NCBI RefSeq assembly: GCF_001194135.2
Contig: NC_068984.1
Span: 6,925,159-6,962,382, forward strand
Direction of reading: 5' to 3'
Length of the DNA: 37,224 bases
Source: Octopus bimaculoides
Taxonomy: Eukaryota
The notes beneath the pieces are model-generated. The model did not search any database. It had not been told where the DNA came from and worked only from the letters and a program-made list of their open reading frames with translations. Below are positions 34,187 through 34,515 of the stretch, piece by piece. How positions within the stretch are numbered: position 1 is the stretch's first letter; each line of letters begins with the position of its first letter. The position numbers and the translations under genes were made by a program.

Positions 34187-34311
34187 AGTTCTATATTTAA
34201 AAGATGAGGAATTATGTACATTATTTACATTATTGACATTTGACATATGGTGTAGTGGTAAAGAGCGCGGGCTACTAACCTCAAGACTCCGAGTTCGATT
34301 CCAGGCAGTGA

Positions 34312-34357
<46 letters not shown>

Positions 34358-34515
34358 TTCGAAAAATACCTTAGGAATGAGAACCCAAGTTCGAAATTTC
34401 CCCAAGACACCTGATGAAGGCTGGAGGGTACATCGGCCGAAACGTGTTAACAACAAACAAGATGAGGACAAATATCCGTCAAATGTAAATAATCTAAATA
34501 ATCTAAATAATGTAC
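34187..34515 (+). mobile_element. tRNA-headed SINE with HHR-bearing tail (family 2), preceded by an inverted 3' stub
   Basis: Inverted stub 34187-34244; A box TGGTGTAGTGG 34248-34258; B box GTTCGATTCC 34293-34302; (AAT)n 34316-34355; HHR 34406-34448; tail to about 34515. Confidence 0.88.
34406..34448 (+). ncRNA. Type I HHR with canonical core but shortened cleavage-site region
   Basis: GACAC CUGAUGA A GGCUG gaggguacau CGGCC GAAAC GU GUU. Relative to GAAACGUUGUGUU at 4746-4758 it lacks 3 nt, so there is no clear NUH or stem I. Confidence 0.55.

Follow-up and report, generated by a model that had tools for sequence, protein, structure and literature searches.

Within a 37,224-nucleotide stretch of the Octopus bimaculoides genome (NCBI RefSeq assembly GCF_001194135.2, contig NC_068984.1, positions 6,925,159 to 6,962,382; the window in what follows), we analysed an insertion at 34187-34514, referred to as copy A, which is a dead fossil of a non-autonomous retroelement family. 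Read from its left end, copy A consists of a short inverted stub, a head with an RNA polymerase III (Pol III)-type promoter, an internal (AAT)13 microsatellite, a body and a tail that carries a minimal type I hammerhead ribozyme motif (Table 1). A preliminary description of this DNA had claimed A and B boxes, an (AAT)n repeat, a hammerhead-like string and an inverted 3' stub, all of which are present in the sequence, and had placed the element at 34187-34515; the start of that span is correct and its end is not, as the element stops at 34514 and its right target-site duplication starts at 34515. The duplication is a 12-mer, CAATATTAATAA, and a shared flank word of 12 bp was reached in 0 of 200 shuffles. 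Because this one duplication surrounds both the stub and the forward element, the two entered together.

The stub of copy A measures 58 nt in total (34187-34244, minus strand), and 34211-34244 matches 34478-34511 of the forward element at 88% over 34 nt by BLAST. Its outer 29 nt (34187-34215) have no counterpart at the forward end, and the forward copy stops about 29 nt before the full 3' terminus of the family. This 29-nt extension is present on the inverted stubs of copy A and of two further window loci, B and C, and not on their forward 3' ends; on forward ends it was found in the protein model P0001 and at L002, a locus outside the window. Compared with copy D, the head of copy A lacks its first 3-4 nt, and the body at 34357-34405 can be aligned in part with a sister family, T. 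As its target, copy A used the AAT-like 3' tail of another repeat resembling a short interspersed nuclear element (SINE); the copy that it entered, at 34100-34186, belongs to a family that serves as a control below. A diverged relative, L006, has just AATAATAAC where (AAT)n sits, which is why we conclude that the microsatellite expanded inside the element and dropped the alternative that it is the old 3' tail of a precursor SINE.

Further loci of the family were located by BLAST of the copy A region against the window, giving four loci in 37 kb whose copies are 85-93% alike and whose unit is about 330 nt long. Locus B is a tail-only palindrome, both arms of which lie within a 12-bp duplication (CTATAATTTCTT, at 4598-4609 and 4816-4827). 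No target-site duplication was detected at locus C, and its forward copy carries, between (AAT)n and body, an insert of about 115 nt that is unrelated to the family. Locus D is without an inverted partner. The preliminary description had held that one inverted terminus, (c)agttc(t/c)(a/g)tatttaa, is common to the starts of the loci at 4611, 18484 and 34187, and this is confirmed; it had also asked whether duplications exist, which they do at loci A and B. The head-to-tail junction repeats at loci with different flanks, namely A, C and D in the window and the diverged L006 and L014 outside it, and the composite is therefore the unit that moves.

Relatives outside the window were collected with a profile of the tail's open frame, which first yielded 58 representatives and, when 8000 candidate proteins were scored, over 4700 at E <= 1. 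They split into two families: family O is octopus-like, its members being O. bimaculoides models together with Logan contigs from runs SRR11869384-394, and family T comes from ENA assembly ERZ21867824 and NCBI GCA_052426985.1. The consensus sequences of O and T align across the whole module of about 149 nt, from helix I to the 3' terminus. Family T also forms tandem arrays of 129-nt units (two units in L016, three in L015 and five in L005), in which the end of one unit supplies the helix I 5' strand of the next, so that two motifs stand in cis as they do in animal retrozymes. At two loci (L004 and L016) the T module lies behind a different head with a B-box-like GGTTCAATCC; to judge from the sequences, the different heads on T and O modules represent the head-swapping typical of SINE evolution. 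A third sub-family, V, is represented at L005 7651-7988 by a clean insertion with inverted and forward arms inside a 15-bp duplication (AGTACTATCTTGGTA), a 41-nt extension on the forward end only, a GGCCA/UGGCC helix II and a GUA cleavage triplet. The same architecture recurs in one NCBI assembly, in long contigs from ENA and in Logan contigs, the latter from five different runs. The tail was absent in DNA scans of metagenome and viral contigs.

The O. bimaculoides protein model P0003 ('dystrobrevin beta isoform X1', GCA_001194135.2; 94 aa) consists over its first ~33 residues of translated SINE tail (GEGWRVYQPKCCVNNKQDEDKYPSK), either an exonised copy or an annotation artefact. At L013 1-410, a diverged tail copy stands right after an open reading frame (ORF) fragment (..NFWLNRLTEVQEIL..) that looks by eye like the region upstream of the reverse transcriptase (RT) of a long interspersed nuclear element (LINE). 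This fragment has no Pfam match, and we read the arrangement as a probable insertion into a LINE remnant.

Integration footprints, promoter-type head and hammerhead motif

Insertions of Penelope-like elements (PLEs) are 5'-truncated, often partially tandem and often accompanied by an inverted 5'-truncated copy beside the 5' end; they carry an extension of 30-40 bp at either end but at one end only, and show a bias for microsatellite targets (PMC8557442; also PMC8969392). All of the insertion hallmarks listed in PMC8557442 appear in the octopus element or its sister family. Head-to-head inverted partners are present at window loci A, B and C and at L002, L004, L005 (7666-7973), L006, L011 and L015, that is, at three of the four window loci and at 7/12 loci after removal of two that had been picked for palindromic-looking peptides. 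By contrast, two other SINE-like families of the window (six and three copies) have no adjacent inverted pair among nine, and the hypergeometric probability of 3/4 against 0/9 is 4/286, or about 0.014. On the question of whether inverted stubs are more frequent here than for other SINEs, which the preliminary description had set as a test of its reading, the window families answer in its favour.

The duplications, of 12, 12 and 15 bp, each surround an inverted and a forward arm. The one-sided extension is 29 nt long and on the inverted side in copy A and locus B, and also on the inverted arm of locus C; in the L005 element it is 41 nt long and on the forward side, and the occurrence on both sides fits the 'either end' wording of PMC8557442. 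The 29-nt extension of copy A corresponds to the 30-40 bp 'tail' described for PLEs (PMC8557442). Partial tandem copies, which would correspond to the pseudo-long terminal repeats (pseudo-LTRs) of PLEs, are clear in family T, and the window shows none for the octopus family. Together, these data make it well supported that the integration footprints are those published for PLEs and not those of LINEs.

The head contains an A box (TGGTGTAGTGG; TGGCGTAGTGG in copy D) and, 33 nt past it, a B box (AGTTCGATTCC), both near the consensus quoted in PMC8969392 and within the 30-35 nt spacing of transfer RNA (tRNA)-type SINEs. In the window, the combined A and B box pattern matches only the head of copy A and 20537-20591 on the minus strand, and none of 200 shuffles produced it. 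These boxes are the evidence that points to a Pol III-type head. The head may resemble tRNA-Arg, a likeness that we treat as a lead. No internal T4 run interrupts the forward unit, and the TCTTTT in the extension is compatible with a Pol III terminator, which it weakly suggests.

The hammerhead motif of copy A is composed of GACAC (34406-10), CUGAUGA (34411-17), an extra A (34418), GGCUG (34419-23), a 10-nt loop, CGGCC (34434-38), GAAAC (34439-43) and GU (34444-45). Its CUGANGA and GAAA boxes are present, and position 17 is not H: a 3-nt deletion has placed a G there, removed the helix I 3' strand and destroyed the cleavage site. A relaxed hammerhead pattern matches three times in the window against 0.07 expected, and none of the six window tails forms an intact ribozyme or matches the strict pattern. 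The cleavage site is 3 nt short in A and C-left, the second of which has also lost part of CUGAUGA; C-right is without the helix II 5' strand, B-left has a 19-nt deletion, and B-right and D are truncated. Because no window tail is intact, the consensus ribozyme that had been assembled from the four loci in the preliminary description is a mosaic. Within the window its GUU-GUGUU segment ties 2:2 with a dead form that is 3 nt shorter, and the consensus is recovered once outside and translated copies are added. The long form occurs in the diverged Logan-contig copy L001, in the O. bimaculoides protein models P0001 and P0003, which translate the tail, and in nearly all of the 58 translated relatives, where CCUGAUGAAGGCUGG gives PDEGW and CCGAAACGUUGU gives PKRC; on this comparison of copies, GUU-GUGUU is the ancestral form.

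The resulting family consensus reads GACAC-CUGAUGA-A-GGCUG-(10 nt)-CAGCC-GAAA-CG-UU|GUGUU. For the minimal hammerheads of PLEs, Cervera and de la Pena name features that go beyond their search descriptor (PMC4209133), and the consensus possesses all four of the hallmarks published for this dimer-acting type (PMC4209133), including a G10.1-C11.1 pair, a palindromic 15.2-16.2 pair without loop 3, and a short helix I. A single motif is predicted to be unable to form helix III, and two motifs would be needed, pairing through an ACGU duplex in trans, to cut after GUU.

We examined conservation of the motif in 24 copies aligned from the window, Logan contigs, ENA contigs and one NCBI assembly. Overall, 71% of helix cells are paired compared to 15-52% when the partners are slid, figures that come from related sequences and from a structure derived from the consensus. 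In helix II, 81% of cells are paired and two pairs have changed on both sides (pair 4: UA 10, CG 8, UG 4; pair 5: GC 20, AU 2). Helix I keeps its inner three pairs, the outer two are found in some sub-families only, and at pair 4 the octopus family has A-U where a variant has U-A. Conservation reaches 92% at the eleven positions of the invariant core, compared to 73-81% for other classes (p = 0.004). Of the core columns, the free position N7 varies most (A 14, U 6, C 3), and position H17 is U in 18, A in four and G in two copies, both of the latter being deletion mutants. The extra A before helix II is found wherever its column is present (23 of 23 copies), pair 22-42 is GC in 13 and GU in two, and the GAAA-CG-U palindrome retains its C in 22/24 and its G in 20/24 copies. 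An absence of stem covariation had been named beforehand as a refuting observation; helix II does covary and the core is the best-conserved part, subject to kinship among the copies and to CpG decay. Covariation at the level of the translated peptides is confounded by family structure and CpG decay, and we gave it no weight.

Mobilisation and rival explanations

Taking these observations together, we consider it probable that 34187-34514 is the fossil of a non-autonomous, Pol III-headed retroelement family that carries a PLE-like 3' module and was mobilised by a PLE. The unit consists of a head of about 70 nt with a Pol III-type promoter, a short AAT repeat, a body of about 50 nt and a 3' module of about 150 nt, whose layout is that of a PLE 3' end, its minimal type I hammerhead lying about 100 nt before the terminus. 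Pol III would start at the head and run to the T-run in the last 29 nt, and a PLE reverse transcriptase would then recognise the 3' module, meaning the ribozyme fold and the conserved stretch after it; such recognition is suggested by the conservation of the module across three sub-families and by the footprints. A putative GIY-YIG-type endonuclease would make nicks 12-15 bp apart, both of which would prime reverse transcription on element RNA, and the expected outcome is that a forward copy meets a 5'-truncated inverted copy head to head in one duplication, one end keeping 29-41 nt of extra template. Ribozyme cleavage would be easy in the tandem arrays of family T. Single-unit octopus copies would need two RNAs for it, and cleavage in them would sever the 3' module from the head; since octopus cleavage would be possible only between two RNAs, the motif may matter mainly as a recognition structure.

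Neither the window nor the element contains an ORF with a telomerase-like RT or a GIY-YIG endonuclease, and the element is therefore at most a PLE dependant, not a member. A partner PLE is absent among L004, L005 and L016. At L004 3700-4535 (minus strand) lies what is left of a PLE. Its GIY-YIG ORF scores 27.2 bits in Pfam, where the cut-off is 22.6, and it has a hammerhead of its own, CCUGAUGA-U-GGCCC..GGGCA-GAAA-GUAC-UA, about 120 nt past the stop codon and about 170 nt before a 3' end at an (AT)n microsatellite, the same layout as in the SINE tail. Its different hammerhead rules it out as the partner, and a match at L016 4227-4280 that we considered for the same role is only a decayed copy. 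The preliminary description had proposed a captured PLE pseudo-LTR mobilised by a PLE RT/GIY-YIG enzyme; an autonomous PLE sharing the tail was not found among these loci, for which reason we base this putative capture and mobilisation on the footprints and on analogy. Its composite reading stands insofar as the element is dispersed and non-coding and has a Pol III-type head joined to a hammerhead tail of the PLE 'minimal' type, and fails insofar as the ribozyme of copy A is broken.

Several observations weigh against mobilisation of a Pol III-transcribed unit by a PLE. The window ORFs and about 75 kb of other loci yielded no autonomous PLE that carries this 3' module, and the hammerhead of the L004 PLE is unrelated to that of the SINE tail. 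Of nine loci examined, six are without a clear duplication, and part of the outside sample was reached through ORFs, a route that may favour some arrangements. ARAGORN, with its threshold relaxed to 60%, finds no tRNA in the head, neither head matches the Rfam tRNA model at E <= 10, and the support for the earlier label 'tRNA-headed' comes from the A and B boxes. Only two of four octopus copies of the 29-nt extension carry the T4 run of TCTTTT, and the ribozyme is defective in every window tail. As for the pairing evidence, the main helix II covariation (C-G to U-A via U-G) amounts to two CpG transitions, the C-G/U-A change essentially separates the two families and so reflects few events, and a C·A mismatch is about as common as U-A among translated copies. 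Lastly, in vitro cleavage by minimal PLE hammerheads is poor (PMC4209133).

A broader proposition, which we advance tentatively, is that these repeats might represent a class of SINEs, the first to be recognised, that are Pol III-promoted and exploit PLEs and not LINEs, present in at least two animal lineages with swapped heads and with the hammerhead module as the signal for the PLE RT.

Among the alternatives, we regard it as unlikely that the family is a non-autonomous PLE derivative or single-unit retrozyme, still PLE-dependent, whose head is a passenger or relic and whose RNA arises by read-through or from RNA polymerase II. No tRNA fold was detected in the head, many copies propagate without one (locus B and the V element of L005), family T forms retrozyme-like 129-nt arrays, and according to reviews any polymerase may transcribe retrozymes (PMC7761336), all of which this explanation accommodates. 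It accounts less readily for A and B boxes that are near consensus, canonically spaced and unique to heads, for a head-to-tail junction kept in the diverged L006 and L014, and for a family T module that lies behind a different B-box-like head at two loci; headless copies, moreover, are expected from 5' truncation.

We find it quite improbable that copy A is an ordinary tRNA-SINE mobilised by a LINE, with stubs produced by twin priming or later rearrangement and a hammerhead string irrelevant to mobility. SINEs do normally use LINE tails, octopus genomes are rich in RTE, CR1 and Dong-R4 elements (PMC13282606), and one diverged tail copy, at L013, stands directly behind a LINE-like ORF fragment. 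That fragment, however, corresponds by eye to a region upstream of the LINE RT domain and not to a 3' untranslated region. Twin priming by a LINE inverts an upstream segment; it would not duplicate the 3' end and adds no template sequence, whereas the stubs carry 29-41 nt that are missing from the forward copy. Nor do LINE-type events account for the nine copies of other SINE-like window families being free of inverted pairs, or for a motif that fits the PLE minimal hammerhead and whose core is preferentially conserved.

Scarcely credible, finally, is the idea that the palindromes are assembly artefacts and the ribozyme motif a chance match. In its favour, the window comes from a gapped draft (3207 N) and the Rfam hammerhead models give no match in gathering or E-value mode on the window, the motif or five loci. 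That silence is uninformative for this ribozyme type, as the intact minimal hammerhead at 553-579 escapes Rfam too. The motif occurs three times where 0.07 occurrences are expected, the structure lies in its entirety between the duplications, and recurrence of the same architecture in independent assemblies, long contigs included, excludes an assembly artefact.

Other repeats in the window

The hammerhead at 553-579 (plus strand; CUGACGA-A-GAGC-UUU-GCUC-GAAA-CG-UA, helix I GUUU/AAAC) is intact and belongs to a second repeat family that is unrelated to copy A. Every copy of this family ends in (TA)n, and two copies converge on one (TA)n. The strict hammerhead pattern has two matches against 0.02 expected, and the copies probably represent truncated PLE 3' ends or another PLE dependant. 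The SINE-like control family includes three copies in a row at 11801-12498 and has no adjacent inverted pairs. At 21164-21289 lies a near-perfect palindrome of 126 nt, its arms 82% complementary and unrelated to the copy A family, that may be a foldback element or one like a miniature inverted-repeat transposable element (MITE). On visual inspection, ORF fragments at 1093-1513 (plus strand; ..HQDNVRPHTA.., ..PYSHGLAPSDYHFF..) resemble the C-terminal portion of mariner/Tc1 transposases; they have no Pfam match at E <= 0.01 and three unnamed homologues only. About 9% of the window consists of N, microsatellites abound in it, and all sub-threshold Rfam microRNA matches fall on (TG)n, (TA)n and (TATG)n microsatellites (e.g. 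24345-24511) and are artefacts.

Table 1. Coordinates of the repeats described in the text; positions refer to the window unless a locus label precedes them.
Feature	Position	Strand	Remarks
Copy A, left target-site duplication	34175-34186		CAATATTAATAA; same 12-mer at 34515-34526
Copy A, one-sided 3' extension, 29 nt	34187-34215	-	Sense strand ATAATTCCTCATCTTTTAAATATAGAACT, T4 run inside
Copy A, inverted, 5'-truncated copy of the element's own 3' end	34216-34244	-	Reverse complement gtcaaatgtcaataatgtaaataatgtac, matching 34470-34514
Copy A, head with Pol III-type promoter	34245-34315	+	A box 34248-34258, B box 34292-34302
Copy A, internal (AAT)13 microsatellite	34316-34356	+	
Copy A, body, from (AAT)13 to ribozyme motif	34357-34405	+	Common to copies A, C-left, C-right and D
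Copy A, minimal type I hammerhead motif, inactive	34406-34450	+	GACAC-CUGAUGA-A-GGCUG-(10 nt)-CGGCC-GAAA-CG-U
Copy A, conserved 3' region of tail	34451-34514	+	Terminates ..AATAATGTA; aligns with families O and T to the 3' end
Copy A, right target-site duplication	34515-34526		CAATATTAATAA
Locus B, inverted arm, tail only	4610-4720	-	3' extension at outer end
Locus B, forward arm, 5'-truncated inside ribozyme core	4712-4815	+	Long form GAAACGTTGTGTT
Locus C, inverted copy	18483-18716	-	3' extension, tail, (ATT)n/(AGT)n, last nucleotides of head
Locus C, forward copy, 5'-truncated in head	18717-19087	+	Foreign insert of ~115 nt at 18819-18930
Locus D	20390-20598	-	Full 5' end (GGGCATATGGCGTAGTGG..), (AAT)n, body; ends inside helix II loop
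Family T, arrays of 129-nt units	L005 10288-10899; L015 61-688; L016 9880-10340		Some behind a head, one behind an inverted unit
Second hammerhead repeat, copies	~330-690 (+); 694-944 (-); 6938-7194 (-); 28318-28563 (-)		
SINE-like control family, copies	10040-10175; 11801-11984; 12053-12193; 12370-12498; 23387-23506 (-); 32798-32922; also 34100-34186		B-box-like GTTCAAATTCC, ATT/AAT tail

Comparison with known systems

SINEs are the textbook parasites of LINEs, and if our explanation is true, this rule extends to a third retrotransposon class, the PLEs. A short, abundant substrate would then keep the products of PLE integration (inverted partner, one-sided tail and duplication) within hundreds of base pairs, not kilobases, and the unresolved mechanism of PLE insertion would become easier to test. 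Dispersed minimal hammerheads have previously been read as truncated PLEs and not as SINE tails (PMC4209133); our data suggest that many such 'orphan' motifs in animal genomes may be SINE tails, and that retrozymes and SINEs may grade into each other. In the latest O. vulgaris annotation, 893 of 900 recently active SINE families are 'unclassified' beside active Penelope families, and octopus SINEs amount to about a tenth of the genome (PMC13282606). The broader proposition, if true, would account for part of this unclassified load, and a SINE that rides on PLEs would allow at least one octopus SINE family to be classified and assigned a partner.

Three tRNA-derived octopus SINEs, OK, OR1 and OR2, were reportedly described by Ohshima and Okada in 1994, and OR1 and OR2 are said to resemble tRNA-Arg. 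The present family might be identical to OR1, OR2 or OK; it would then already be known, although we found no account of its ribozyme or its PLE-type integration. Identity with Ceph-SINEs was ruled out, the published Ceph-domain strings being absent from the element. A full-text literature search found no tRNA-type Pol III-promoted SINE with a PLE minimal-hammerhead tail, no PLE-type integration footprints for a SINE and no hammerhead in octopus SINEs.

Among ribozymes, PLE minimal hammerheads come nearest to the octopus motif; among elements, the nearest are Sm-alpha and Sj-alpha of Schistosoma. The ribozyme of these schistosome elements is a canonical hammerhead of high activity, with loop-loop contacts and a helix III that is short but real. 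To the extent that Sm-alpha and Sj-alpha are summarised in PMC6765202 and PMC8490949, they resemble the octopus element in being short and non-coding and in having a type I hammerhead behind a Pol III promoter, and they are often repeated (Ferbeyre 1998 and Laha 2000, as given there); they differ in having no sequence relationship to it, and the summaries in these two sources report no PLE-type footprints. The minimal hammerheads of PLEs share more of the motif with the octopus element, namely the CUGANGA and GAAA boxes, the unpaired nucleotide before helix II, the G10.1-C11.1 pair, a palindromic C15.2-G16.2 without loop 3, a helix I of 3-5 bp, predicted activity as a dimer only, a position 100-170 nt from the 3' end, and inverted or tandem insertions (PMC4209133; Lunse et al. 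2017 cited there). By contrast, the octopus element has no RT/GIY-YIG ORF and places a Pol III-type head before the module, and its helix II is 5 bp long with a 10-nt loop, compared to 6-8 bp in those described.

Among non-autonomous elements, the MRC1 element of Chlamydomonas, a non-autonomous Chlamys PLE, is likewise short (PMC8557442). Such non-autonomous elements share only their 3' ends with autonomous PLEs and yield pseudo-LTRs and head-to-tail insertions, but they belong to the green-algal Naiad/Chlamys clade, which is without canonical hammerheads, and have no head derived from a small RNA (PMC8557442). Metazoan non-LTR retrozymes are, like the octopus element, non-coding, hammerhead-bearing and proposed to depend on PLEs (PMC7761336; 10.64898/2026.07.22.740005). 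They are defined by tandem arrays and circular RNAs, with no promoter motif reported (Li, Clavereau & Pollet 2026 preprint), whereas the octopus element is single-unit and dispersed and has an internal Pol III-type promoter. The arrays of family T, with 129-nt units and one motif in each, would meet the operational definition of a retrozyme and, by its tandem criterion, would qualify as non-LTR retrozymes. With hammerhead-bearing SINE-like elements of schistosomes and animal retrozymes proposed to depend on PLEs already published (PMC6765202, PMC7761336, bioRxiv 10.64898/2026.07.22.740005), the idea of a SINE that depends on a PLE is less isolated than it looked in the preliminary description.

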